DNA of 64,000 nucleotides from positions 20,956,001-21,020,000 of the forward strand of contig NC_086101.1 in assembly GCF_963921235.1 (NCBI RefSeq), read 5' to 3'. This stretch comes from Mobula hypostoma. Taxonomy: Eukaryota. Positions 36,951 through 55,003 of the stretch are shown one piece after another (positions within the stretch are counted from its first letter, which is position 1; each line of letters begins with the position of its first letter). The notes beneath the pieces were generated by a model. That model had not been told where the DNA came from, made no database searches, and saw only the letters and a program-made list of their open reading frames with translations. A program made the translations under genes and the position numbers.

Positions 36951-37040
36951 TCACATCAGGATTGTGTCATCGTATATCGTCGTGAGCTCTGCCCTCGGAT
37001 TTTGCCGTCCTTTGTTGGCATCCAGTTGATGTAAATGTCT
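36951..37040 (-). CDS. Candidate terminal cytoplasmic exon of the CD2/SLAM-like gene
   Basis: Strong acceptor tacttttttttcaaaccacag. Phase 0 gives RHLHQLDANKGRQNPRAELTTIYDDTILM*; phase 2 gives DIYINWMPTKDGKIRGQSSRRYTMTQS*. Locally CpG-rich. Confidence 0.5.
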   Translation of the reverse strand, partial: RHLHQLDANKGRQNPRAELTTIYDDTILM

Positions 37041-37463
37041 CTGTGGTTTGAAAAAAAAAGTAATTTCAATGATCCATGTGTTTAGACTTTGTGATTATCT
37101 GACTTGTTCTGGAAACACAATGTCCACGGAGAGAACGCAGAAGACTGTTTAAAGGGAATTGAATACAAGATAGTTTTCATACTTTAGCACTGATAAATCA
37201 AAGAATTGAAAAAAAATCAGTATAATTTTTGAAGTATAGGGCGGAATAGAGAGATTTTATATCATAACATAAAGTAAAATGTGTTTTCTAATTGTTAGGC
37301 ATCTTTACACTGTGGGCTACTGAGAACTGGCTGCAGAGTTCTGCTTTCTATGATAATTTCCATCCCTCTATCTCTGCAAAGGGAGTACTTTACAGTAGTG
37401 TGGAGGTTTTAACTGCGGAGAAAGCTTCATGCTATAAGACATGGAAAGGAATGGAGACATTAC

Positions 37464-37558
37464 CCTGCTATGGAGTGTCTTTCCCAATGCCTTGTGGAAT
37501 ATTGCAGGGGCAGCTCTAATGTAAAGAGTCACATACTCTTCCACTTCAAACACAAAAA
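37464..37558 (-). CDS. Candidate internal cytoplasmic exon (two possible acceptors, 37558 or 37515)
   Basis: Donor AGG|gtaatg; acceptors tttcacctgcttttgactcag and ctctttacattag. The frames link the TM exon to the 37040 exon without stops. Confidence 0.4.
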
Positions 37559-38019
37559 CTGAGTCAAAAGCAGGTGAAACCATACATGTTATCAGCTTAT
37601 CAGGATTGTACAAATATAATGTGCTACCTTTAGTACTAACCTCTCTCTTACCCTCTCCATCTCCATCTCTCTCTCTCTCCTGTTTCTTGTTCCAGTCCTA
37701 CCTGTTATCCGATTACTCATCTGTATTTTTATTCAGACCCATGGTGTGTGACCATTTTCTGCAGTCAGCATCCACACCACATTGAGCTCCACAACTTCTA
37801 CATTTCCTAGCCAACAGGACAAATTTTATTGATAATTTAAAAAAATATATATTTTTTGTTCTCCCATAGACTTGCCCCTTCCCAGCAGCAATCGCTCTGA
37901 GTAATATAATCCTCTAAAAAAACTTCACCTTGTCACTGAAGGAATGCAACAAACTGATTGGATAGCTGCATCTAATCAGTTGTAAAATTCTAAAACAATA
38001 AAATCCCTCTCTAATCATA

Positions 38020-40410
38020 TCATAGAAACATAGAAAACCTACAGCACAATAGAGGCCCTTCTGCCCACAAAGCTGTGCGAACATGTCCTTACCTTAGACA
38101 TTACCTAGGGTTACACATAGCACTATATTTCTCTAACAAATATTCCACTCTCCCCTCCTACCCCTCCTCACAGTCCCCCACCCTGCTCTCATGACCATAC
38201 CCCTCCCCCACACGAAACCACCACGGTGGGCTTCACAGCTGAACAGGTGAGAAGACAGCTGAAACGTCTCAACCCAAACAAGGCTGCGGAACCGGATGGT
38301 GTCAGTACCAGGGTGTTCAAAGCCTGTGCCCCTCAGCTATGTGGAGTACTTCGCCATGTATTGAGCCTGAGGCTCCGGAGGGTTCCTGTACTGTGGAAGA
38401 CGTCCTGCCTCATCCCTGTGCCGAAGATACCGCGCCCCAGCGGCCTCAGTGACTACAGACCAGTGCATTGACCTCCCACATCATGAAGACCCTGGAGAGA
38501 CTTGTTCTGGAGCTGCTCCGGCCTATGGTCAGGCCACACTTAGATCCCTTCCAGTTTGCCTACCAGCCCCGAATAGGAGTTGAGGATGCCATCGTCTTCC
38601 TGCTGAACCGTGTCTACGCCCTCCTGGACAAGCCAGCGAGCACTGTGAGGGTCATGTTTTTTGACTTCTTCAGTGCGTTCAACACCATCTGCCCTGCTCT
38701 GCTGGGGGAGAAGCTGACAGCGATGCAGGTGGATGCTTCCCTGGTATCATGGATTCTTGATTACCTGACTGGCAGACCACAGTACATGTGCTTGCAACAC
38801 TGCGTTTCCGACAGAGTGATCAGCAGCACTGGGGCTCCACAGGGGACTGTCTTGTCTCCCTTTCTCTTCACCATTTACACCTCGGACTTCAACTACTGCA
38901 CGGAGTCTTGTCATCTTCAGAAGTTTTCAGATGACTCTGCCATAGTTGGATGCATCAGCAAGGGAGATGAGGCTGAGTACAGGGCTACGGTAGGAAACTT
39001 TGTCACATGGTGTGAGCAGAATTATCTGCAGCTTAATGTGAAAAATACTAAGGAGCTGGTGGTAGACCTGAGGAGAGCTAAGGTACCGGTGACCCCTGTT
39101 TCCATCCAGGGGGTCAGTGTGGACATGGTAGAGGATTACAAATACCTGGGGATACGAATTGACAATAAACTGGACTGGTCAAAGAACACTGAGGCTGTCT
39201 ACAAGAAGGGGCAGAGCCGTCTCTATTTCCTGAGGAGACTGAGGTCCTTTAACATCTGCCGGATGATGCTGAGGATGTTCTCCGAGTCTGTGGTGGCCAG
39301 TGCTATCATGTTTGCTGCTGTGTGTTGGGGCAGCAGGCTGAGGGTGGCAGACACCAACAGAATCAACAAACTCATTCATAAGGCCAGTGATGTTGTGGGG
39401 ATGGAACTGGACTCTCTCACGGTGGTGTCTGAAGAGAGGATGCTGTCTAAGTTGCATGCCACCTTGGTCAATGTCTCCCATCCACTACATAATGTGCTGG
39501 GTGGGCACAGGAATACATTCAGCCAGAGACTCATTCCACCGAGATGCAGCACTGAGCGTCATAGGAAATCATTCCCGCCTGTGGCCATCAAACTTTACAA
39601 CTCCTCCCTTGGAGGATCAGACACCCTGAGCCAACAGGCTGGTCCTGGACTTATTTCATAATTTACTGGCATAATTTACATATTACTATTTATGGTTCTA
39701 TTACTATTTACTATTTATGGAGCAACTGTAACAAAAAGCAATTTCCCCCAGGATTAATAAAGTATGACTATGACTATAAGCTTCAAGTACCTATCCAGGA
39801 GTCTCTTAAGAGACGCTATCATATCCGCCTGCACCACTGCCGCCGGCAGCCCATTCCACACACTCACCACTCTCTACATAAAAACTTACCCCTGACATCT
39901 CCTCCGTACCTGCTTCCAAGCACTTTAAAACTATACCCTCTCATGCTTGCCATTTCAGCCCGAGGAAAAAGCCTCTGACTATCCACATGATCAATGCCTC
40001 TCATCATCTTATACACCTCTATCAGGTCATCCTCTCATTCTCCATCGCTCCAAGGAGAAAAGGCGGAGTTCATTCAACCTATTCTCATAAGGCATGCTCC
40101 CCAATCCAGGCAACATCCTTGTAAATCTCCTCTGCACCCTTTCTATGGTTTCCACGTCCTTCCTGTAGTGAAGCGACCAGAAATGAGCACTGTACACCAA
40201 GTGGGGTTTGACTAGGGTCCGAAATAGCTGCAACACTACCTCTCAGCTCTTAAACTCAATCCCACGATTGATGAAGGCCAATGCACCGTACACCCTCTTA
40301 ACCACAGAGTCAATCTGCGCAGCTGCTTTGAGTGTCCTATGGACTCGGACCCCAAGATCCCTCTGATCCTCCACGCTGCCAAGAGTCTTAACCATTAATG
40401 CTATATTCTG
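38020..40410 (-). mobile_element. CR1 3' fragment split by a nested Rex1/Babar element
   Basis: catagaaacatagaaaacc tail at ~38020; the sequence resumes at ~39780; RT C-terminus at 40027-40236. Confidence 0.8.
38136..39778 (+). mobile_element. 5'-truncated Rex1/Babar LINE, RT largely intact (ORFs 38226-38471 and 38468-39661, one frameshift)
   Basis: DYRPV|TSHIMKTLERL, QFAYQP, GAPQGTVLSPFLF, QKFSDDSAIVG, RLYFLRRL; tail tatgactatgactat. Confidence 0.92.
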
Positions 40411-40866
40411 TTATATTGTATTTTTCTGCCTCTGTAAAACTAACTGACTGAGCTTCTGGCTGTCTGGCTTCAGTTTTTGTTAACTGCAGTGTGCCAATTC
40501 TAGATCATTAACATTTGATGTGCCGTATTCTAAAATCTTGCAGATGGAGCTGGAGAGGATTTGTTATTGGTAGCTCTGTTTGGATGGCGTGGGTGCAATA
40601 TGCTGAGCGAGATGAACTGTAACATTGTGACATACAGTAATCAAATTGCAATTCTCTTGTGCAAAGCAAGAGGCCTTTATCAAATGGAACCATCCCACAG
40701 CATCAGACAGAAGATGAAAGTTCAGGCAGAGAAAGAAGGAAACTGATCAGGGTGTGAACAAGTTTGTTCTTGTTGAAAGTATCACTGGTTATTTGGTACT
40801 GAAACTGAGAAAAATGGAGAGAATATGAGAGCATAAATCCAACAAACATTTGCAGCTTGTACTAAC

Positions 40867-40891
40867 CTGGTCCCTGGCAATGCTTGTTCTC
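40867..40891 (-). CDS. Candidate 25-nt cytoplasmic micro-exon (GEQALPGT), phase 1 to 2
   Basis: Donor CAG|gttagt; modest acceptor ttgtgatcag; in frame with the TM exon. Confidence 0.25.
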
Positions 40892-42943
40892 CTGATCACA
40901 ACATAAGCACTGATTTATTTCTCCTTTCAGTGTCAGAAGCTTTAAATTAAAAAAAAACATGCTGTTGAAACCATTTCTGGATGCTCCTTCTGTTTTGTTT
41001 TCAGAAAATATTTTCTCTAAATATCTTTTCCCTTAAAGATTACCTGTGCTCAATCCTTCCACCAGCCATAACTTCTCCATTCAAAAACCTGACTGACTGC
41101 ACAACCACAAGGGCATCTTAGAGAAGTCTGATCCTATCCTTAATGTGCACACTGTGGGCATTTCCTTTCACTGACCTACCCAGCTGCCATCCAGCCCCAT
41201 TAGGAACTTTCACTAGGAATGAAGAATCCAGTTATTTCTCATTGGTATCAAGGCTGTACAGTAGACTTTGGACCAGGGAAAATCATAAACTCTCACCCTC
41301 AGAGGAAAAAATAAATAACCAAGGTGGAATTCCATTCTTCATTGTCAAGTGAACTGGGAGTACTCTTCACAGCCAATACAATTTAAGAAAACACCTGTGC
41401 CCAGTCTAGGTGAACTGACATTTACATCATGATGTTGGTCACCCCTGAATCTTCCGTTGAAAGGATGAGTTGGTCATCCCCAATTGTCTCCAGTTTCCAC
41501 AATACGAACAGTGTTCTGTGCTAAAGGATAAAAAACTGCCTAATCAGACAGACTTCATGAAGTTAATGGTGAATCCTGTGGGCAATGTTCCCAATGCTTG
41601 GCTGTCCCTGCTTTCCCTTGTCCTTTGCTTCAGCCACTGAAATGCAGATAGTGTAGGGGCAGGAGCAGGAAACCAAGCAGGTTACTCCCATTATCATTAC
41701 TTTACTCACAGACTGGAATTTCACTTTTGCAACATAAAACCATTCCTTCCATTCTGGCTGTCTGGATGGTTCTTCAGACTGTCCAATTCATAACCATTTT
41801 AATCACCTTTAATCTCCATTGAAAAATTCCCAGCTTGATTTATTTATTTGTCTACAGCACCTTCTCAAATAATGATTGTGTGCTGCACTCTCTTTGTTTC
41901 CTCAGCCTCCACCCTCAGTGTACAACATCCAAGAAACATTTGCTGTTAATAATGAAACCCATGCAGCACAGTTATGAAGTTACATTATCTGTAAACTAGT
42001 TTAAATGGAATGCAGATATATAAACATCACTAAAACTTTTAAGAGCAGATTGTATTACATGGCACTTCGGAGCAACAGGCATTGGTTTTCTGCAATGTAC
42101 CACTGTTAGGAATGAAATAACTTGGATCCATTCAATACTGAACTTGCTTTTGTGAACTGAGCTAGCTCCCAATTGTGGTTCACACTTTGGCCCTGCATAT
42201 TCTTAGATCCCATAAGGGGTACACAGATGGTTGCTGAACAGCAGGGAAATCCACACCCCCGGCAATGGAGAGTATGCAAAGCAAGACTGTTCCTTTATGT
42301 GTTGGATTACAAAGAGGAAATTGGGGTCCGTTGTGTTGGGGTGGAGAGATGTTTGAGATTTGTAGCTGGGGGAGAGGTTTTCTAGTCAGGTGGGTACCTC
42401 CAATCAGGAGATGGCAGAGAGCTTGTCCGGTGTTGTGGGTTGGAACCATGGGGGAGAAAATAGTGTGTGGTGCAAGACCTGACTGACAGGCACTGCAAAA
42501 GCTTTCTTCTGTAGTGACAGGCCGAGAAATGGTGATGGCCATTCCGAAGTGAAGGAAAATCCCAGGGATAGTGCGCGTTGAGGGCCACTGCACTTTCCTG
42601 GGATGCTCTTTGTCAAGCTGCAAAAGGGATCAGAACTGGAGTCACACGCACCACATTTTATAGTCACCAAATTTCATTAAACATGCGGCACACATGGTGG
42701 AACATGTGGTGAGTTATCCCCTCAGTTCAAGGACTTATTGTATTTGTTTTCCTACTCAGGATGTGGTATACCCTCACTCCACTAATAATTGCATGGTGAT
42801 GATCACTAGTTTAGTGAGACCATACACGATGGGAACTAAAGCAAGAGATCCCATTAATAAGGACTAACTTGAAGCCAACTATTGTGATGGGCATTACCAG
42901 GGGTACACAATCTGACTTAATAAGAATACTCTAGAGTACTTGC

Positions 42944-43060
42944 CTTTATTGATCTTGAGTTCTCTCTTCCAATACAAAGTGAAAACAATAGCCGTGATGA
43001 AAGCTATCAGAGTAATGGTAGTAATTAAACAAATGTGGAATGGCCCCAGTAGTTTCTCAC
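42944..43060 (-). CDS. Transmembrane exon of the CD2/SLAM-family receptor
   Basis: Acceptor cccttttcag; 117 nt, phase 1-1. Encodes GEKLLGPFHICLITTITLIAFITAIVFTLYWKRELKINK (hydrophobic run plus basic stop-transfer). Donor AAG|GCAAGT, a GC donor. Confidence 0.85.
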
Positions 43061-44499
43061 CTGAAAAGGGATGGACATTCATCTGTGATTCTCTCAACAT
43101 TTAAGTTAAACTTGCTTTAAAATAGGAAATACAACAGACTGGTGAAGCTGAGATCAAGAGGAGAGCTGATACAGAGTGTGACATTAACATTCAGTGAAGG
43201 AACAAAATGATTTTAATGGTCAATTATTTCCTGTAACATGCTTGTGATGACACACGCGTGAAGCTGCAGTACCAGGAATCCCTACACCACAGAAGGAAGC
43301 TAGCCACCAATTCCAGCATTCCCTCTCCCTTGGTCTTTCCACACAGCCCAGATTGATTGTTTCCACCGATCCTACATGTGGTTGATTGCACACCACAACC
43401 ACTCCATTCAAAAGCATATTCCCTCCCTTGTGCCTTTTGCTCAGTATCTGTGGCATGTAGCCATGGAAACATCTGCTAATGGAAAAACATCAAGGATACA
43501 TCAAGATGTATAAAATGATAAGACTGGAGAGACATTCAAATAAGGCTAATATAAGAGGGCATAATTATATAGTGATTGGATAATAGTATAGGGGGTTCAA
43601 TCATTCAGAGGTTCAGTGGTTCCAGAGAATGTCTGCAGTATACAACCTGAAAATCTTACTCTCTGCAGACAGCCTTGAAACAGAAGAAAAATCCCAAAGA
43701 ATGAATGACAGAAAAGATGTAAGAACCCCAAAGCCCCTTGTCCCCTCCCACACACAAGCAACAGCAAGCAGCATTAACCCTCTCCCCACTTATTCTGGCA
43801 GAGCGCATCAGCACTCCCACCAGCCATTATGCAAGAAACAGCAAAGGGCCAAAGAGAGAGCATGGTCTACAGTCCATAAAAAACTACTGTTCAACATCCC
43901 TCAGGCTCTCTCTCTCAGCTAAGCAGAGACGGATATCACTCCTTCCACAGTAAGAGGGACACACAGTCGCTGTTTCGATGTTACAGTCCGTAGCACTACT
44001 TTTATTTGAGTTTCCCCCAACTCGAGAATCAGCAGCAACCTCTCACTCACCATCGAGACAGAGAGAGAGCGGTCACCCGAGTGGAGAGGCCTCTGACAGT
44101 CTCGAGAGAAGGCAACTAACAAAGTCATTAAGAAGGAAAAGATGGAATATGAAAGTAAGCTGGTTAATAATATTAAAGAGGATACAAAAAGTTTCTTCAG
44201 ATACATAAAGTGTAAAAGAGAGGTGAGAGTGGATATCGGACCATTGGAAAATGATGCTGGAGAGGTAGTATTGGGGGACAAGGAATTGGCAGACAAACTG
44301 AATAAGTATTTTGCATCAGATTTTACTGTGGAAAACACTGGCAGTACGGTGTAAGTTCCAGAGTGTCAAGGGTCATGAAACGTGTGAAATTGCCATTACG
44401 AAGGAGAAGGTTTATGGGAAACTGAAAGCTCTGAAGGTAAGTCACCTAGACCAGATGGTGTACACCCCAGGTTTCTTAAAGAAGTAGCTGAAGGGATTG

Positions 44500-45200
44500 T
44501 TTTTATTTTTACACCCCAATTAACTCTGGCCACACCCCCCATAAAACCGCAGCCACTACACTACCCTATCCACCAAAGCCCTATATGCTCACCACACAAA
44601 ACTTCACAACCTGTTCTCTCCCAACCCATTCTCTCCCAACCCAACATATACATCCACCATCCCTACCCTCAAACCTAATCTTAATGTCCAAGGGGGCACA
44701 TACCCCCCACTAACCCTAGGCACAACCTCACAAATGCAATGACTTGTGTAGGAGGGGGGGAAAGATCCAATAAAGGCAAGTGTTGGACCTGGTTAATGAA
44801 GGCATGGGCCAGATCAATGTGGCAGGGTTGTGTGACACAGAATCTCAAGTGACAAGATCAAGAAGCACAAGAGAGCTGATTCACCCACTGCCCGAATAAT
44901 CTCAATCCGTCTCGTTGTCTCAATGTTTCGGCTTCCCATGATGCTACAGTTTGTGATGCCGGCGAAAAATCAGCTCAACAAGACCATACAAGGTCACGAC
45001 CTGAAGGAGCTTCCTTCCAGGCCTCGCCTGGAGATATTGAAAACACAGCCAATTGGCAAGCCCTAAGAACGTGAACACGCTGCCGTCAAGCTCTTTGCAG
45101 TCAAGCTCTGACTGGCCCATAGATGGGGCCAGAATGAATAGGGCAGCAAAGTTAAGTCTGGAGTTTATGCTCAGGCTGCACATTCCTAAAACTCACCGAT
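44500..45200 (-). mobile_element. Degenerate L1-like 3' remnant
   Basis: HNPATLIWPMPSL resembles the fish L1 ORF2 C-terminal ...PATLIHMFW.CP.L; followed by an A/C-rich tail. Confidence 0.4.
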
Positions 45201-45315
45201 CTATCTCAGACCTGACTAATCCATTGTATGGGTATTGAAATTAGAATAGAAAGGAAATAAATAACTGTCAGTATTTGAGAAAAGTTTACGGGTGTTGAAG
45301 AAGTAATGCACCAAC

Positions 45316-45603
45316 CTTCAGTGTCTGGACAGAGGTTTCTGAGATCCACACTCATAGTTGCCTCACTGACAGGGTTCCTCACTGTGCAGTTGTACACTCT
45401 GTTATCACTCGGCCTTAAGGACAATTCCAGACTTCTCCCTTCGTCAGTCAGTACATGAGACTCATCGGTCGTGACCTTATCATCTCCTGTCCACCAAGAG
45501 TAAACTGGCTTCGTGCCACGTTCCAGTAAACAGTCCAAGCTAATGTTACATAGCTCATTTGAGACAAATTGGCTGCTAGTTATTACGGGTGTTGATACAC
45601 GTT
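45316..45603 (-). CDS. Ig C2-set exon of the CD2/SLAM-family receptor (intact copy 1)
   Basis: Acceptor ttttcttataaacag; 288 nt, phase 1-1. ERVSTPVIT...CNISLDC...YSW...YNCTVRNPVSE...LRNLC carries the CD2/SLAM C2 signature with two Cys pairs. Donor AG|gttggt. Confidence 0.92.
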
Positions 45604-46603
45604 CTGTTTATAAGAAAAACAAAAAAAAGATAATGGTTTGTCAACAAGAGATATTAATTGTGAGCCTGTCTCAAGAACTTTGATATAGGGCTAAGAGAAG
45701 CCTGTTCAGCCATTCATCAATCTCATTTTTATCCTATCCTAAATTCCTTTTATATACAAAAGATCTATCTACTTTAGTATTGATTGACCTTAATAATTAA
45801 GTCTCCCCAGTCTTCTAGAGTAGTCCTACCCCTTACTCTGACTCTAGCCTTCTCAGGCTGGGCAGATATCCACCAAGCATCCACTCTATTAGGACCTATG
45901 AGATTTGTTTCTTAAGTTTTGGTGAGATTACCTTTCATTCTTCTGAACTTTTAGGAATACAGGTGTACACTACTCAGTCTGTTGTATGGAAACCTATCCA
46001 TCCCAGGAACTGTACTGCTGACATTTAGTTAGAACTCCCATGTATGTCACGTTTTAAATAAGGAGACTGAAATGGAACTTGTATGAACAGCTTTGAGAGT
46101 ACTAGAACATTTCTTGTCCATATTATCTCTGTTCCACGTGGATTTTCAGTTAGCAAGCTCAATAGTCTAGTAGCTTCCACTCCTGTTCTTCACTTTCACG
46201 TCTCTTCTGCACTGTACAATTCTCCTTCCAAATAGTAAGGAGGAGAGGTAAATGCTGCTGTCGTACCCTCTCACCACTGAACATTGTGGTTTCTGGGACA
46301 ATAGGATGAGGATGCAGGTGGCAGCAAGTATTTATTGTAAGAGATCATACTGTCAGATGACTTAGTGTTCCCTTCTGGAAGGGAACCATCCAATTTTTTT
46401 GCCAGCAGTATGTACAGTAAACAGACAGTGCTTCGGACCGGGTCCTTCACAAAAGCAGGTGCTGCATCTGAGCAGTGTTTCAGTGTTCCCTCTGCCTTGT
46501 GTATCCCACAGGCTTCGGCTCGACCGCAAACATCTCCCCTTTCATCTTTAATTACTCTAAAAATGTCAGACCAGAATATATGTTATAATGAAAGTAATAT
46601 TAC

Positions 46604-46933
46604 CATAAATTCGCAGTTCCATCACTTCATGATGGACATCTGCATCGGTCCTTGCATTTATTTCATACAGGCCTTCATCACTGTATGTTAGGTTCTGTAT
46701 TTCCAGGCTATAGTCCTTCAAGTTTAATGTTACCCTCTCTCTCTTACAATTTGTTGGATTGTTTGTATATTTCACACATAATTGAATCTTTTTTTGATGA
46801 GATGAATTTGTGTAGTCCCAAGCAATGAATGAAATGTTTTCTCCTGACACATTTCCTGGCAAAGTGACTGACTGTCCCAGTGTCCCATTCACCACACAAC
46901 GAGTAGCCGGGTTCCCATTGGTCCCTGCCAGAA
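46604..46933 (-). CDS. Ig V-set N-terminal exon of the CD2/SLAM-family receptor (copy 1)
   Basis: Acceptor ccttctgtttcag, donor TG|gtaata; 330 nt, phase 1-1. NGTLGQSVTLP...W...SLEIQNLTYSDEGLYE lacks the canonical V-set disulfide, as in CD2/SLAM N-domains. Confidence 0.93.
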
Positions 46934-47660
46934 CTGAAACAGAAGGACATGTCATTAGAGTCATTAGTCTCAGTGTGTTGGTGTCCACATTTCCACAGCA
47001 TGGCAACTCTAGCAGGGTCCCAAATCTGAGGGACAAGAGGAAGCAGGCAGATGAGAACACCACCACATGTTGGGACGATGCCCTTTTACCTCAGTGGCAC
47101 ACATGCTATCTAATGACCATGGAGGAAAACAATTAAAACACAAAAGTGGTTTCTGATAGAACAGCTATGCTCCACGCAAGGCTGTGAATACACAATGCAT
47201 TTTTGTTTGTGACACGGGAGACTACAGTTGCTGGTACATAGAAATAATCTGCTGGAGGAGATCAGCATTTCAAACTGCTTCTATGGTGGGGGGGGGTGGT
47301 CGATTAATGTTTTGGGTAGAAATCCTGCATCATTACTTACCCTCACAGATGCTGCCTGACCTGCTGAGTTCCTCCAGCAGTTTATGTTTTTTGCCACAGT
47401 TTAATTGCATTGGCACAACATTTATTTTTGCTGGCTCTAAACCCTAGAACATCCTCCCCAACACCATTGTGCGGGCATCTTCCCCAGAAGGACTTAAACT
47501 GTTCCAGAAGGCAGCTTACCAGCACTTCTCAAGGGCAGTTTGTGATGAGCAGTAATGGTGACCTTGACAGCAAAGTACAGGGTGGAGAAGGGAAATGGTG
47601 GGAGAACGATCTGGTCCCATAAACTACAATAGGCACACTCAGTCATCACTTTATTCAGTT

Positions 47661-50005
47661 CATAGAATCATAGAACCATAGACCCATAGAATATTACAGC
47701 ACAGAAACAGGGTTTTTGGCCATTCTTGGCTGTGTCGAACCTTTTTTCTGCCTAGTCCCACTGACCTGCTCCTGGACCATATCCCTCCATACACCTCTCA
47801 TCCATATACCTGTCCAACTTTTTCTTAAATGTTAAAAGTCAGCCCGCATTTACCATTTCACATGGCAGCTCATTCCACACTCCCACCACTCTGTGTGAAG
47901 AAGCCCCCCCACTAATGTTCCCTTTAAACTTTTCCCCCTTCACCCTTAACCCATGTCCTCTGGTTTTTTTTTCTCCCCTAACCTCAGTGGAAAAAGCCTG
48001 CTTGCATTCATCCTATCTATACCCATCTTAATTTTATATACATCTATCAAATCTCCCCTCATTCTTCTACGCTCCAGGGAATAAAGTCCTAACCTATTCA
48101 ACCTTTCTCTGTAACTCAGTTTCTCAAGTCCTGGCAACGTCCTTGTAAACCTTCTCTGCACTCTTTCAACCTTATTAATATCCTTCCTGTAATTTGGTGA
48201 CCAAAACTGCACACAATACCCCAAATTCGGCCTCACCAATGCTTTATGCAACCTCACCATAACATTCCAACTTTTATACTCAATACTTTGACTTATAAAG
48301 GCCAATGTACCAAAAGCTCTCTTTACGACCCTATCTACCTGTGGCGCCACTTTTAGGGAATTTTGTATCTGTATTCCCAGATCCCTCTGTTCTACTGCAC
48401 TCCTCAATGCCTTACCATTAACCCTGTATGTTCTACCTTGGTTTGTCCTTCCAAAGTGCAATACCTCACACTTGTCTGTATTAAGCTTCATCTGCCATTG
48501 TTCAGCTCAGTTTTCCAGCTGGTCCAAATCCCTTTGCAAGCTTTGAAAACCTTCCTCACTGTTCACTACACCTCCAATCTTTGTATCATCAGCAAATTTG
48601 CTGATCCAATTTACCACATTATCATTGAGATCATTGATATAGATGACAAATAACAATGGACCCAGCAGTGATCCCTGTGGCACACCATTAGTCACAGGCC
48701 TCCACTCAGAAAAACAATCCTCCACTACCACTCTCTGGCTTCTTCCATTGAGCCAATGTCTATTCCAATTTACTACCTCTCCATGTATACCTAGCGACTG
48801 AATCTTCCCAACTAATGTCCCATGCAGGACCTTGTCAAAGGCCTTACTGAAGTTCATGTAGACAACATCCACTGCCTTCCCTTCATCCACTTTCCTGGTA
48901 ACCTCCTCGAAAAACTCTAATAGATTTCTTAAACATGACCTACCATGCACATGACTCTCCCTAATAAGTCCCTGTCTATTCAATTACTTGTAGATTCTAT
49001 CTCTTAGTACTCCTTCCAATAACTTACCTACTACCGACGTCAAATTTACTGGCTTATAATTTCCCGGGTTACTTTTAAAGCCTTTTTTAAACAACGGAAC
49101 AAGATGAGCTATCCGCCAATCCTCCGGCACCTCACCCGTAGATACCGACATTTTAAATATATCTGCCAGGGCCCCTGCAATTTCAACAGCAGTCTCCTTC
49201 AAGGTCCGAGGGAATACCCTGTCAGGTCCTGGGGATTTATCTACTCTGATTTGCCTAAAGATAGCAAGCACCTCCTCCTCTTCAATCTGTATAGGTTCCA
49301 TGACATCACTACTTGTTTGCCTTATTTCCATTGATTCCATGCCAATTTCCTTAGTAAATACAGACGCAAAAAACCCATTTAAGATCTCCCCCATTTCTTT
49401 TGGTTGCACTCTGATCTTCAGGAGGACTAATTTTATCCCTTGCTATCCTTTTGCTCTTAATATACCAGTGGAAGCTCTTTGGATTATCCTTCACCTTGAC
49501 TGCCAAAGCAACCGCATGTCATCTTTTAGCCCTCCTGATTTCTTTCTTAAGTATTTTTTCGCACTTTTTATACTCCTCAAGCACCTAATTTGCTCTCTGT
49601 TTCCTATACATGTCATACATCTCTCTCTTCTTCTTTATCAGAGTTGCAATATCCCTTGAGAACCAAGAGTCCTTATTCCTATTCACTTTGCCTTTAATCC
49701 TGACAGGAGCATACAAGCTCTGCACTCTCAAAATTTCTCCTTTGAAGGCCTCCCACTTACCGATCACATCCTTGCCAGAGAACAACCTGTCCCAATCCAC
49801 GCTTTTTAGATCCTTTCTCGTTTCTTCAAGTTTGGCCTTTTTCCAGTTTAGAACCTTAACCCGAGGACCAGATCTATCCTTGTCCATGATCAAGTTGAAA
49901 CTAATGGTGTTATGATCACTGGAACCAAAGTGCTCCCCTACACAGACTTCCATCACCTGTCCTAACTCATTTCCTAACAGGAGAGCCAATATTGCAGCCT
50001 CTCTA
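47661..50005 (-). mobile_element. 5'-truncated CR1 LINE separating the two V-C2 cassettes and fused to the copy-2 C2 exon
   Basis: catagaatcatagaacc tail at 47661; RT ORFs 47946-49409 (SKFADDTKIGG); APE C-terminus AILALLLGNELGQV...SDHNTI from 50005. Confidence 0.93.
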
Positions 50006-50252
50006 GCCTCACTGACAGGGTTTGTCACTATGCAGTTGTACACTGTGTTGTTATCACTCGGCCTTAAGAACAATTCCAGTCTTCTCCGTCCATCAGTCAG
50101 TACATGAGACTCATCGGTCGTGACTTCATCATCTTCTGTCCACCAATTGAAAACTGGCTTCGTGCCATGTTCCAGTAAACAGTCCAAGCTAATGTTACAT
50201 ATCTCATCTGAGTCAAATTGGCTGCTATTTATTACAGGTGTTGATACATCTT
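50006..50252 (-). pseudogene. Ig C2 exon copy 2, truncated after NPVSEA by the CR1; native donor lost
   Basis: EDVSTPVIN...CNISLDC...YNCIVTNPVSEA reads directly into CR1 ORF2 (ORF 49585-50187). The acceptor atgaacag is intact. Confidence 0.88.
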
Positions 50253-51237
50253 CTGTTCATAAGAAAAATACAAATAATGATAATGGTTTGTCAATGACAG
50301 ATATTAGTTATAAACATGTCACAAGATCTTTGATATATAGCTAGGAGAAGCTTGCTCTGCCATTCATCAATCACATTTTTACCCTATCCTAAATTCCTCT
50401 TATATACAAAAGATCTATCTACTTCAATAATTAAGTCTCCCCAGTTTTCTAGAGTAGTCACATCCCTTAGTTTGACTCTAGCCTTCTCAGGTTGGGCAGA
50501 TGTTCCCCAAGCATCCACTCTATTAGGACCTATGAGATATGTTTCTTAAGTTTTGGCACAATTACCTTTCATTCTTCTGAACTTTTAGTGCACAGGTGTA
50601 CACTACTCAGTCTCTTGAATGGAAACCCATCCATCCCAGGAACTGTACTGCTGACATTTAGTTAGAACTCCCAGGTATGTCTCGTTTAAGATAAAGAGAC
50701 ATAAATGGAACTTGTATCAACCGCTTTGAGAGTACTAGGAATATTCCTTCCCCATGTTATCTCTGTTCCATCTGGATTCTCTGAAATGAAGCTCAGTAGA
50801 CCAGCACCTTTGTCTCCTGTCCTTCACTTTCACTTCTGTTCTGCACTGTACAATTTTCCTTCCAAATAGTAAGGAGGAGAAGTAAATGCTGCTGTCGTAC
50901 CCACTCACCAGTGAGCAATGTGGTTTCTGGGACAATAGGATGAGGACGCAGGTGGCAGCAAGAATTTATTGTGAGAGATCATACTGTCAGATGGCTTAGT
51001 GTTCCCTCCCAGAAAGGAACCATCCAATTTTTTTGCCAGCAGTATGTACAGTAAACAGACAGTGCTTCAGACCGGGTCCTTCACAAAAGCAGGTGCTGCA
51101 TCTGAGCAGTGTTTCAGTGTTCCCTCTGCCTTGTGTATCCCACAGACTTCAGCTCAGACCAAAACATCTCCCCTTTCATCTTTAATTACTCTAAAAATGT
51201 CAGACCAGAAAATATATTATAATTAAAATAATATTAC

Positions 51238-51567
51238 CATAAATTCGCAGTTCCATCACTTCTTGATGGCGATCTGTATCGGTCCTTGCATTTATTTCAT
51301 AGAAACCTTCATCACTGTCTGTTAGGTTCTGTATTTCCAGGCTACAGTCCTTCAGTTTTAACGTCATCCTCTCTCTGTTACAAGTTGTTGGGCTGTTTTT
51401 ATATTTCACACATAATTGAACCATTTTTTGATGAGATGAATTTGCATAGTCCCAAGTAACGACTGAAATGCTTTCTCCTGACACATTTCCTGGCAAAACG
51501 ACTGACTGTCCCAGTGCCCCATTCACCACACGATAAGTAGCCAGACTCCCATCAGTCTCTGCCAGAA
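51238..51567 (-). CDS. Ig V-set exon, copy 2 (open frame, intact splice sites)
   Basis: 330 nt, phase 1-1, same acceptor and donor as copy 1; about 75% aa identity to copy 1 by hand count. Confidence 0.9.
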
Positions 51568-52289
51568 CTGAAACAGAAAGACAAACCATTAGTCCCAGTG
51601 TATTGGTGTACACATTTCCATAGCATGGTCACTCAGCAGCGTTCCAAACTCAAGGGACAAGAGGAAGCAGGCAGATGAGGACACCACCTCATGATAAGGG
51701 GATGCTCTTTTACCTCAGTGGCACACGGGGTGTCTAATGACAATGGAGGAAGACAATTGAAACACAGAAGTGGATTTCTGATAGAACAACTGTGCTCAAT
51801 ACAAGGCTGTGAATACACAGAGCATTTTTGTTGGTGATACACGAGACTGCAGTTACTGATACATAGAACAAAAATAATCTGCTGGAGGAGATCAGCATTT
51901 CAAACAGCTTCTCTGGCGGGGGTGGGGGTGCTGCTATTAATGTTTTGAGTAGAAACCATACATTACTTACCCTCACAGAGGCTGCTTGACCTACTGAGTT
52001 CCTCCAGCATTTTGTGAGGGGCAGAAATAGGCCATTTGGCCCATGGAGTCTGCTCCACCATTCCATCAGGGCTATAAAAAGTTTTTCCCTTTCAACTCCT
52101 TTCTCCCGTATTCTTGCGTGTCGCTTGACACCCTTACTAATCAAGGACCTATTGACCTCCATTTTAATTATACCCAATGGCTTCACCACCCTCATTCAGC
52201 ATTCAGTCCATCTCTCCATCACTGCTCTTATTATTGATAATTTTTCTGACCACCTCATTTATTGAAATTTTGGGGCAGATTACCGAAGT

Positions 52290-52510
52290 GATTAGTGTTA
52301 ACGCTATTAGAGTGGCAGCAACCCAGGTTCATTCTCCAATGCTGTCTGTAGGGAGTTTGTACGTTCTCCACTTGACTGCATAGGTTTTCTCCGGGTGCCC
52401 TGGTTTCCTCCCACATTCCAAAAATGCCTCGTTTAGTAAGATAATTGGTCACATGGGTGTAATTGAGCATCAGGGCTCAGTTGGACCGGAATCGGCTCTT
52501 ACCCTGCTGT
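52290..52510 (+). mobile_element. V-SINE/HE1-type SINE
   Basis: Core gggagtttgtacgttctcc...ggttttctccgggtgccctggtttcctcccaca. Confidence 0.7.
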
Positions 52511-52729
52511 ATCTCACCATAAATTTAAATCTTAATTGTTTCCTATTATTAATAATTAACTTCACATATTTTTACTGTCAAATTCAAGGCGATCAAAACT
52601 AAAATGCTGCATATGAACAATTAAGCATTGAAAAGTATCAGTGGGTTAATTATTAATATTTTATTTCAACCTAGGATCAAACCCAGAGTAAAATAAAGCC
52701 ATTTGTTTGAAATGCAGTACTAGATAAGT

Positions 52730-53800
52730 GGCTAACACAAGCAAAAAAAAACGTGGACACAGTCAAAAGGGGTTTCCAAAAGAGAAATGTTACATACTGT
52801 TGGTTGCAGATCATAACCAGTCCACACAATGAACCCTCCTATTGCTTGTGACTTTTGCCCAGTATCCCTGGCTTGGTTCAAGCATCTGATGGCTGAGATG
52901 TAATAACTGTCTCTGAACCTGAGGCTCCTGTACCTTCTTCTTGATGGCAGCATCAAAAAGAGAGCATGGCCTAGATGGTGGGGGTCCTTGAAGAAAGATG
53001 CTGATTTCCTGCAACAACACTCTGTGTAAATGTGTGTAATGGTGGGGAGAGCATTACCCATGATGGACTGAGCTGTATCCACTACTTCGCAGGCATTTCC
53101 ATTCAAGGGCATTGCATTGGAAGTTCCATATCAAGCCATGACATGAGCAACCAATATAATCTCGACGCACATCTATGGAAGTTTGTCCAGTTTGGATGCC
53201 ATGCCGAATCTTCACAAACTTCTAAAAGAGTAGTGGAGCTGCCGAAATTTCTTTGTAATAGCACTTGCGTGTTGCACCCAGGACAGATCTTCTGAAATGA
53301 TCACACCAAAGAATTTAAAGTTGCTGTCCTCTGATACCTCGATGTGGACTGGCTGATGGATCCCCGGTTTCCTCCCCCTGTGGTCAATAGTCAGCTCCTT
53401 GGTCTTGGTGACTCCTATATTCTGACTTACCATCACCTTTGATTCAGCCAATGACAGTGGTGAAGTCGGCAAAATTAAATAGGCATTGGAGCTGAGCTTA
53501 GCTCCACAGATATAAACATAAAGCGAGTTGAGAAAATCTCTAAATACACAGTTATATGTTGTTGCCAATCCGAATTGACTGGGGCGGCAAATAAGGAAAA
53601 CATCAATCTAGTTGCACAAGGAGACATTAAGGTCTAGATCTTGGAGCTTAGTGATTAGTTTTTTTCGAGGATGATAATGTTGAATGCCAAACAATAGTCA
53701 ATGTAGGGCATCCTGTCATACGAATCTTCGCTGCCCAGATGTTCCAGGGTTGAATGAAGAGCCAATGAAACGGCATCTGCTGTTGACCTGTTGCGACAGT
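52730..53800 (-). mobile_element. Degenerate Rex1/Babar-like fragments
   Basis: LPSRRRYRSL (52732-53112); KTKELTID and FKFFGVIISEDLSW (53212-53568). Confidence 0.7.
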
Positions 53801-53989
53801 AAGCAAATTAGAATGGACCCAAGTGGATCCCCCTTCTTAGCGTCATCTATAAATTTGCTAATCCCATTTACCACATTATCATACAGGTCATTGATGTCCA
53901 CGTAATTAACTGACTGAGCACCAGTCCCTGTGGCACAGGCCTCGAGTCAGCAAGGCAGCTATCAACTATTGATCTCTGGCTTTGCTCAA

Positions 53990-54840
53990 AAGTCCATTGT
54001 CTAATCCAATTTACTCCTATCATGTGTTTTAATATTTCTGTACTAATTAAGTAATATTGTAAATATATTGTTTGATTAAGCATTCTTGATCATTTAAATA
54101 ATTCATATGCATGAAGTAGATGAATGTTATGTGTGTGTGCCTCACCTAAAGTTAAAACCTTACACATTTTTATCTCCTAGCTCCCTTATTTTCCTTTCAA
54201 TTAGTTTTTTATGTTTTGCAGTTGCAAGATATAACAGTGTGATGAGGAAGATTTAAATGAACCCAAAACCACTACATACCCGTTGAAGCGCAGCAAGATG
54301 TTCAAGTAAAAAAAAACACAAAGCAAAATATTCAAGTTTTTTAAAAGCGCAGTAAGAAATAGACCAATGAAGAAAACAGACATGGTTGAGTTTTAAAAAA
54401 GGCAGAAAACAGACAAATTCACAAATTCATAAACAGTGAGTATATGTGATATTAATCATAAAAGAAAGCTAAAATGGCTGGCTCCATCAGAAAGATAAAC
54501 AATGGGATTTTGTACACTGAGCAAATTTAACCAATGAGAACTGAGTGCCAATTTTGTTAAGTGCATTGGAGTTTAAAGCATCCAATTTACTTTGAAGTTT
54601 TACTACTCCAAATAAACCGGCCAAAATGAACTTTGCTGATATGAAAATAATGTGGGGACGTTTAAAACCAAAGCTATTGCTGATTGCAGAATAATTTAGC
54701 CATCGTAAGTGGAATCAACAGGAAGGGGAGTCCATTTTATTATGTTGCTGAATTTCAGAAGTTGCCTGAGCATTGTCAGTTCAATGATGGTCGTATTGAT
54801 GCATTTAGAGATTGTTTAGTTTGTGGAATGTTTGGGAAAT
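53990..54840 (+). mobile_element. Gypsy LTR-retrotransposon remnant (LTR-like region plus decayed gag)
   Basis: Decayed gag: MAG...VPILLSAL...KPAKMNFAD...KPKLLLIAE...NQQEGES...HCQFNDG...RDCLVCG, with stops and frameshifts. Confidence 0.7.
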
Positions 54841-54956
54841 GGAGAACTTAACTACAAACAGAATTGTGATTACACTGAAAGGAACTTCTCATTGTCAAGG
54901 CAACCACACAAACTAAAGTGCCTGTGTGCTCCTCACCCTGAGACAGATTAACTTAC

Positions 54957-55003
54957 TGAGCTGTGCCCCTGCCCACACAGCAGCCACTGACAACCTGTTT
55001 CAT
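54957..55003 (-). other. Candidate leader (signal peptide) exon of the CD2/SLAM-like gene, one base out of frame
   Basis: Kozak-like gaccATG and strong donor CA|gtaagt. The ATG-to-donor length is 47 nt, but 46 is needed for phase 1. Removing one A of ATGAAAC gives MNRLSVAAVWAGAQL joined to ILAETDG. Confidence 0.3.

Follow-up and report, generated by a model that had tools for sequence, protein, structure and literature searches.

A SLAM-family receptor gene of the devil ray Mobula hypostoma with two V exons and a terminal exon possibly read in two frames

The locus and its gene model

We analysed a 64,000-nucleotide (nt) stretch of the genome of the devil ray Mobula hypostoma (contig NC_086101.1, positions 20,956,001 to 21,020,000 of the forward strand; hereafter the window), in which a sequence-only reading had described an immune receptor gene of the CD2/SLAM family hidden among long interspersed nuclear elements (LINEs) in a probable elasmobranch, as M. 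hypostoma indeed is. With high probability, the locus encodes a SLAM-family (CD2 superfamily) type I membrane receptor and belongs, as one copy, to a tandem cluster of SLAM-like genes of this ray. Searches with tblastn revealed that the exons of the window are 100% identical to the RefSeq protein XP_062905755.1, a 421-residue "SLAM family member 5-like" of M. hypostoma (GCA_963921235.1), which was also retrieved with the second V exon (V-A) as the query in an exhaustive HMMER search of 1.84 billion representatives. In a test of the cluster, two paralogues (P0081 and P0084) were found on the same 199-Mb contig as this gene. The exons and associated features are as follows.

51238-51567, minus strand: V-B exon, encoding residues 33-142 of the RefSeq model (the first of its two V domains); phase 1-1, open reading frame (ORF) intact, 100% tblastn match
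50006-50252, minus strand: remnant of the C2-B exon, first 81 codons; acceptor intact, donor missing; 79% tblastn match to C2-A; Pfam Ig_3
47660-50005, minus strand: CR1-like LINE, 5'-truncated, between the two cassettes; frameshifted reverse transcriptase ORFs, RVT_1 match at 48507-48983
47387-47659, minus strand: unique spacer from the LINE 3' end to cassette A; matches only itself in sensitive blastn
45360-47386, minus strand: cassette A (upstream flank, V-A, intron and first 244 nt of C2-A), paired with 50006-52016
46604-46933, minus strand: V-A exon, encoding model residues 143-252 (the second of the two V domains); phase 1-1
45316-45603, minus strand: C2-A exon; phase 1-1, four cysteines, NPVSE
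42930-43060, minus strand: transmembrane (TM) exon with three candidate donors (the ancestral GC after 42944, GT after 42940, the RefSeq donor after 42930)
40867-40939, minus strand: middle cytoplasmic exon (ASDTERRNKSVL / YVVIRRTSIARDQ); tblastn matches in two frames, splice sites intact
36951-37040, minus strand: terminal coding exon, readable in two frames (A and B)

The physical order along the gene is leader (outside the window), V-B, broken C2-B, LINE, V-A, C2-A, TM, frameshifted middle tail exon and terminal exon, and XP_062905755.1 joins these as leader, V-B, V-A, C2-A, TM and last exon. The splice coordinates read in the window agree with the model; the phase 1-1 exons on the minus strand and the junctions 46604/45603 and 45316/43060, which had been read from the letters, match it exactly. 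The lower limit given to the gene, 36951, is likewise the end of the stop codon (36953-36951) of the RefSeq last exon. The upper limit, 55003, did not hold, for the ATG there is no part of the gene and the leader lies beyond the window; a start at this ATG would give 47 nt of non-hydrophobic coding sequence with a phase 2 end, which the RefSeq model does not contain. A leader within the ORF directly upstream of either V exon was also rejected, as no ATG with a hydrophobic core was found there. The gene spans 35,692 nt, which places its start near window coordinate 72,600 and the leader exon about 8.6 kb past the window end. The leader of XP_062905755.1 (MAKIGSGIVSGLTIIYLLLSDSG) has no 6-residue word match anywhere in the window; it resembles the leaders of paralogues, and in Pristis the intron between leader and V exon measures 33 kb. 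The annotated N-terminus of the paralogue P0084, which lies outside the window, MLELPCCGDVDTNTLGLKTLMVCLSVLVLAETDG, corresponds to the intron stretch directly upstream of its V exon (compare 46934-47010 in the window); this model probably lacks its true leader exon, and its start looks mis-annotated.

The window contains no runs of N, Rfam matched no family in it, and tblastn found no further V- or C2-like exons elsewhere in it beyond cassettes A and B. LINE debris (ORFs with RVT_1 and Exo_endo_phos matches) fills most of the window outside the gene, in keeping with the setting described earlier. The gene is already named in public annotation and is ordinary as a SLAM-family member, so that it adds little as a gene discovery. 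Less ordinary, and moderately interesting, are the V-V-C2 model around a LINE, the loss of the switch-motif reading in the devil-ray copy and the two-frame terminal exon, all three of which await transcript data.

Assignment to the CD2/SLAM family

Both V exons matched Pfam V-set (V-A, E 5.6e-12; V-B, E 8e-11), V-B with additional weak, sub-threshold matches to SLAM and Receptor_2B4, and the two are 75% identical at the protein level by tblastn. V-A is bounded by the acceptor ...ctgtttcag/TT and the donor TATG/gtaata. The V domain carries no cysteine in its B strand (SVTLPG) or F strand (GLYEI) and so lacks the canonical disulfide, as the sequence-only reading had it. The C2 domain, which that reading had ending in NPVS, matched Ig_3 (C2-A, E 2e-8), contains four cysteines and NPVSE; the cysteines C129, C135, C183 and C202 are invariant in 22 homologues. 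The TM segment recognised earlier is a stretch of 23 hydrophobic residues followed by KRELK. The tyrosine-bearing tail exons proposed beside it stood in part: the last exon, with TTIYDD, is in the RefSeq model, and the middle exon is frameshifted.

Sequence, profile and fold searches all pointed to the CD2/SLAM family, and the best HMMER matches were SLAM-family proteins, not members of an unrelated immunoglobulin superfamily group. In the HMMER search, the best matches came from rays, sharks and chimaera under the NCBI names SLAM-, SLAMF5/6/7/9- or Ly-9-like; the close homologues are all from cartilaginous fishes, some of them named CD48-like, and SLAM-like-named homologues occur in 15 or more of these species. 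The best mammalian match was a camel model that fuses CD84 and SLAMF6, to which BLASTP gave 30% identity over V plus C2 (E 9e-20) with the four C2 cysteines and NPVS aligned. A profile built from the 22 cartilaginous-fish homologues matched SLAMF6 over both domains with 70 bits. The AlphaFold (AF2) model of V-A, C2 and TM has a mean predicted local distance difference test score of 77.7, mostly above 85 in the immunoglobulin domains, and a helix at 213-243; Foldseek placed it closest to NTB-A/SLAMF6 (2if7; template modelling score 0.80-0.82, root-mean-square deviation 2.8-3.0), followed by 1hng, 2dru and 1ccz. The CD2/SLAM reading is thus supported by sequence comparison and by the predicted fold.

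A membership in the CEACAM family instead is highly improbable. A disulfide-less N domain and the NPVS of C2 are common to the two families, C2 alone matches generic immunoglobulin and CEA domains, and the ray-family profile scores CEA at 1e-23 and CEACAM1 at 3e-16; however, these profile matches cover no more than the end of V together with C2, and the repeated domains of CEA inflate them. Searched alone against PDB sequences, V-A hit SLAMF6 first (1.1e-7) and SLAMF5 next (5.7e-4), with no CEACAM N domain among the matches listed. The four conserved C2 cysteines align with those of CD84/SLAMF6, whereas CEACAM C2 domains have a single disulfide; in the fold ranking NTB-A, then CD2, CD48 and CD58 all stand above CEACAM1b, which appears at rank 25, and the tails of paralogues carry TIYDEI.

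Orthology to a single mammalian SLAMF gene could not be set, as had been anticipated for a lineage-specific member. The myliobatiform copies grouped, in a maximum-likelihood tree, into a single well-supported clade of their own (100/100) whose interior is a polytomy, and NCBI names differ among near-identical paralogues.

Duplicated cassettes around a LINE

By blastn, cassettes 45360-47386 and 50006-52016 are 87% identical over 2 kb comprising the upstream flank (85.9%), the V exon (88.2%), the intron (89.4%) and the first 244 nt of C2 (90.6%). The homology of cassette B stops exactly at 50005, the start of the LINE, which continues on the same strand to about 47660 and carries ATTCTATG-type repeats near 47650-47700 at its 3' end. 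Since C2-B has lost its donor to the LINE, the sole in-frame full-length product is leader-V-B-V-A-C2-A-TM, with a V-V-C2 ectodomain. C2-B runs in frame into the ORF2 remnant of the LINE for 137 codons, giving a 200-residue ORF (49585-50252, minus strand); such a continuation is a one-in-three chance and has no meaning in itself.

Between V-A and V-B, the ratio of non-synonymous to synonymous substitution rates (dN/dS) is 1.03, and exons and introns are alike in identity (88-91% and 86-89%). Both V ORFs are open, for which a simulation with non-coding substitution and indel rates gave a neutral probability of about 0.04. At the protein level, A and B are 75-79% identical to each other and 70-82% identical to other Mobula and stingray paralogues.

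Two origins considered for the cassettes found no support. Insertion of the LINE with a 2-kb target-site duplication does not fit the 273 nt of unique sequence between the LINE 3' end and cassette A, for which sensitive blastn found no counterpart upstream of cassette B; tandem duplication of a LINE-containing unit does not fit the lack of an 87% LINE copy upstream of cassette B, other LINE copies in the window giving only 65-72% matches. The cassettes may be an old intragenic duplication, or two neighbouring genes may have been fused by a LINE-associated deletion; fusion is a possibility because A resembles B no more closely than either resembles other paralogues.

At the upstream edge of both cassettes lies a 32-nt motif, TGCTGGAGGAACTCAGCAGGTCAGGCAGCATC (47348-47379 and 51978-52009, minus strand), which is without a match in Rfam. 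Its depth in RNA-like contigs (described below) is enormous, above 20,000 in bin 47310-47509, so that it is the core of a repeat that is transcribed and highly abundant in the Mobula genome.

A terminal exon annotated in two frames in cartilaginous-fish relatives

In paralogues, one set of tails reads ...K(F)NK / A.NTERRSESVLYAVI..ARDQ / (PQ)RHLHQLDA.EG.QNPRAQLTTIYDEIKYNPD..., and other isoforms end in ...NEG SHRDIYVNWMP...RYTMR. In Pristis pectinata, the TM exon has two donors. From the GC donor (G/GCAGGT) the route passes through a 74-nt middle exon and enters the last exon in frame A; the GT donor, 4 nt further downstream (GGCAG/GTACTC), joins the same last exon directly in frame B. Frame A in the relatives encodes SVLYAVI, which resembles an immunoreceptor tyrosine-based inhibitory motif, and the ITSM (immunoreceptor tyrosine-based switch motif) TTIYDEI, in agreement with the ITSM consensus TxYxxV/I/L (PMC3958483); frame B encodes ...RDIYVNWMP...RYTMR. 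In Pristis, Scyliorhinus, Heptranchias and Callorhinchus, the annotation gives a single gene isoforms with either tail, and the Heptranchias isoforms also include the third frame. These both-tail isoforms are Gnomon models (the terminal exon lies at 48576-48746 of the Pristis locus), and no cDNA was seen for tail B: the elephant-shark cDNA-derived protein V9K9E0 lacks this tail and terminates by reading through past the middle exon.

Read-through is also seen one exon earlier: isoforms of Hemitrygon akajei (P0080) and Amblyraja radiata (P0092) end by read-through of the TM-exon donor (G-R-T-N-T-R-F-L... and G-R-Y-S-T-I...), and the same read-through in the window (42894-42944) would give GKYSRVFLLSQIVYPW and a stop. 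These genes may repeatedly produce a short-tailed isoform in this way.

Tail lesions in the devil-ray copy

Both tail frames are recognisable in the window on 37048-36968, and three small lesions distinguish this copy. By DNA alignment the middle exon has 73 nt against 74 nt in Pristis, with 1 nt missing between 40906 and 40905, just before the tyrosine codon; the ancestral acceptor AG has become AA at 37048-37047, with a replacement AG 6 nt downstream; and the terminal exon lacks 7 nt between 36968 and 36967 relative to Pristis. In frame A the terminal exon now reads RHLHQLDANKGRQNPRAELTTIYDDTILM (stop 36953-36951), TIYDEIKYNPD having changed to TIYDDTILM-stop, and TIYDDT fails the TxYxxV/I/L consensus (PMC3958483), whereas paralogues keep TIYDEI. 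In frame B it reads DIYINWMPTKDGKIRGQSSRRYTMTQS (stop 36958-36956): the end, ...YMMR-stop in Pristis and YTMR/K-stop in most other species, has become ...YTMTQS-stop, the 7-nt deletion changing only the last residue and adding three. Because the replacement acceptor 6 nt downstream keeps the frame and the deletion alters only the frame B end, frame B stays open; all three lesions fall on frame A, while frame B keeps the conserved DIYINW... tail.

The TM exon offers the same choice as in Pristis, where GC and GT donors 4 nt apart are also found. The GC donor after 42944 was considered as a fourth lesion and rejected, since Pristis has and uses the same GC donor. The RefSeq donor after 42930 (AGA/GTATTC) is weak; it is a GT in Mobula only, of the two species compared, and is absent in Pristis. 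The possible routes to a C-terminus in the window are as follows.

GT donor 42940 joined to 37040: C-terminus ...KINKGKDIYINWMPTKDGKIRGQSSRRYTMTQS (frame B)
GC donor 42944 joined to the middle exon: C-terminus stops at ...SVLML
GC donor 42944 joined to the last exon: third-frame tail, like Heptranchias isoform X4
RefSeq donor 42930 joined to 37040: frame A with the broken motif

These comparisons lead us to a tentative proposal in two parts, which taken jointly is possible but not probable: the terminal exon of chondrichthyan SLAM genes would be read in two frames, chosen by GC and GT donors 4 nt apart, in an arrangement common to chimaera, sharks and rays; and the devil-ray copy would be a natural experiment, having lost the ITSM frame, kept the other and acquired its additional V domain when a cassette was duplicated in association with a LINE, to become a V-V-C2 receptor without the switch.

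RNA-like contigs over the gene

Contigs of four same-species runs, guessed to be RNA, were placed on 45310-51300 and their depth was counted per 200-nt bin. The depth was 0.3-4 on V-A (X11, X20, X25), C2-A (X11, X25) and the 3' end of V-B (X11, X24, X25), and in the thousands on the LINE; no RNA-like contig covered 50110-50309, which includes most of C2-B. In X11 the depth was zero over 45710-46509, most of the V-A/C2-A intron, and that in bin 46910-47109 was as expected from a contig ending at the V-A acceptor (about 46933). One X11 contig of 365 nt lies on 45531-45314 and continues with 147 nt that do not match the intron; its stop at 45314 corresponds to the C2-A donor plus GT, two letters common to the intron and the start of the TM exon. 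The pattern of coverage is that of spliced RNA, on thin evidence that concerns exons only. Among transcript-derived protein fragments over C2, TM and tail, none came from Mobula.

In X24, contig depth was found inside the V-A/C2-A intron (46310-46509) and none on V-A or C2-A. This region holds a plus-strand ORF (46365-46691) with a duplicated counterpart at 50999-51226, and the intron signal could be an antisense or repeat-derived transcript. An X11 contig differs from the window at 46898-46900 (A>G and C>T), turning ...TRCVV... of V-A into ...THRVV..., closer to ...TYRVV... of V-B; this variant could be an allele, a gene conversion between the cassettes or a chimera of the assembly graph.

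Weighing the alternatives

Several points weigh against a functional V-V-C2 receptor with a frame B tail. The dN/dS of 1.03 and the equal identity of exons and introns, as sequence measures, would fit relaxed constraint as well as diversifying selection, and no M. birostris protein above 71% identity was found, given which the gene may be young, fast-evolving or decaying. RNA support is thin: LINE contigs swamped the joints, so that none could be directly read as a splice junction, and the identity of the runs as RNA is a guess. RefSeq picked donor 42930 and frame A, which leaves the frame B end a candidate C-terminus, and in Mobula the GT donor for tail B carries A in place of G at -1. The presumed ligand, cell type and signalling follow the family. 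It is conceivable, though we consider it unlikely, that the gene is a decaying paralogue in a fast-turnover cluster, transcribed but (nearly) functionless, with the V-V-C2 model an ORF-salvaging prediction. Destruction of C2-B by the LINE, the frameshifted middle exon, the lost acceptor and the 7-nt deletion in the ITSM, a dN/dS of about 1 between the V copies, an RNA-like depth of only 1-5 and the lack of an annotated close M. birostris orthologue would all suit such decay. Yet the reading frames of V-B, V-A, C2-A and TM are uninterrupted and their splice sites intact, neutral survival of both V ORFs has a probability of about 0.04, every tail lesion leaves frame B open, and RNA-like contigs of several samples include the exons.

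The ends of the protein allow two further alternatives, each less probable than decay. V-B and V-A might be mutually exclusive or skippable exons that yield two V-C2 receptors with different binding heads, which we regard as quite improbable. Both are phase 1-1 with near-identical splice sites, so that any combination stays in frame, and X24 has V-B without V-A while X20 has V-A without V-B, at depths too low for trust; but contigs show presence, never absence, nothing known enforces mutual exclusion of the V exons, and the RefSeq model joins the two. It is similarly doubtful that the RefSeq C-terminus is real and that SAP-like adaptors can still dock on the phosphotyrosine of TIYDDT. The RefSeq model itself uses that C-terminus, TIYDDT retains the tyrosine and the threonine at -2, and SAP can use a -2 threonine. 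However, the +3 residue is threonine, not V/I/L, and leaves the consensus unsatisfied; the donor AGA/GTATTC is weak and missing in Pristis, and the ancestral route to frame A runs through the now frameshifted middle exon.

Comparison with known systems and proposed function

The closest known counterparts are the mammalian self-ligand receptors SLAMF6 (NTB-A/Ly108) and SLAMF5 (CD84), which give the best sequence and fold matches and share the V domain without a B-F disulfide, the four-cysteine C2 with NPVS, the single TM segment and the plan of one domain per phase-1 exon; their TxYxxI switch motif is shared by the ray paralogues. Unlike them, the ray copy has two tandem V domains, its own tail fails the ITSM consensus and the gene has an alternative tail from the same exon in the other frame; identity is only 24-30%, with no one-to-one orthology. 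LY9 (SLAMF3), with V-C2-V-C2, was likewise enlarged by duplication of a V/C2 cassette, and the ray locus is physically V-C2(part)-V-C2. However, the first C2 of the ray is cut by the LINE at codon 81, without a donor or a covering RNA-like contig, so that the product is V-V-C2, an arrangement that arose independently within rays. SLAMF8, SLAMF9 and CD48 have the family ectodomain without an ITSM, the state that the ray copy has reached, but in the ray the loss is recent and traceable to three small lesions, and a second conserved tail with YxN is still encodable. The Mobula neighbours (Ly-9-like and SLAM-like; P0081 and P0084) and the ray, shark and chimaera genes are 66-75% identical and have the same exon plan, GC/GT donor pair and terminal exon, but each has only one V domain, and neither the middle exon nor TIYDEI is damaged in them.

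By analogy with the family, the protein would sit on leukocytes, where its outer V domain would bind itself or a relative from the cluster, as mammalian SLAM receptors do. Coupling through the ITSM to SH2 adaptors of the SAP/EAT-2 type would have been lost, and signalling, if any, would proceed through the frame B tail with its YxN, a Grb2-type motif. Alternatively, the copy may be an ITSM-less adhesion or decoy member like SLAMF8 and SLAMF9.

Mammalian SLAM receptors tune lymphocyte and natural killer cell activation through the ITSM-SAP switch, and cartilaginous fishes are the oldest living jawed vertebrates. In the literature searched, no paper dealt with the SLAM genes of cartilaginous fishes, and none connected genes of this family with dual-coding exons. 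The locus and its relatives indicate that the SLAM family with ITSM is present and expanded in rays, that its members can change architecture through cassette duplication and LINE insertion, and that one exon may, unusually, supply the tail in two frames. If RNA bears it out, the two-frame tail would be a compact switch of one receptor between two signalling outputs, and the early evolution of the SAP switch would become testable.

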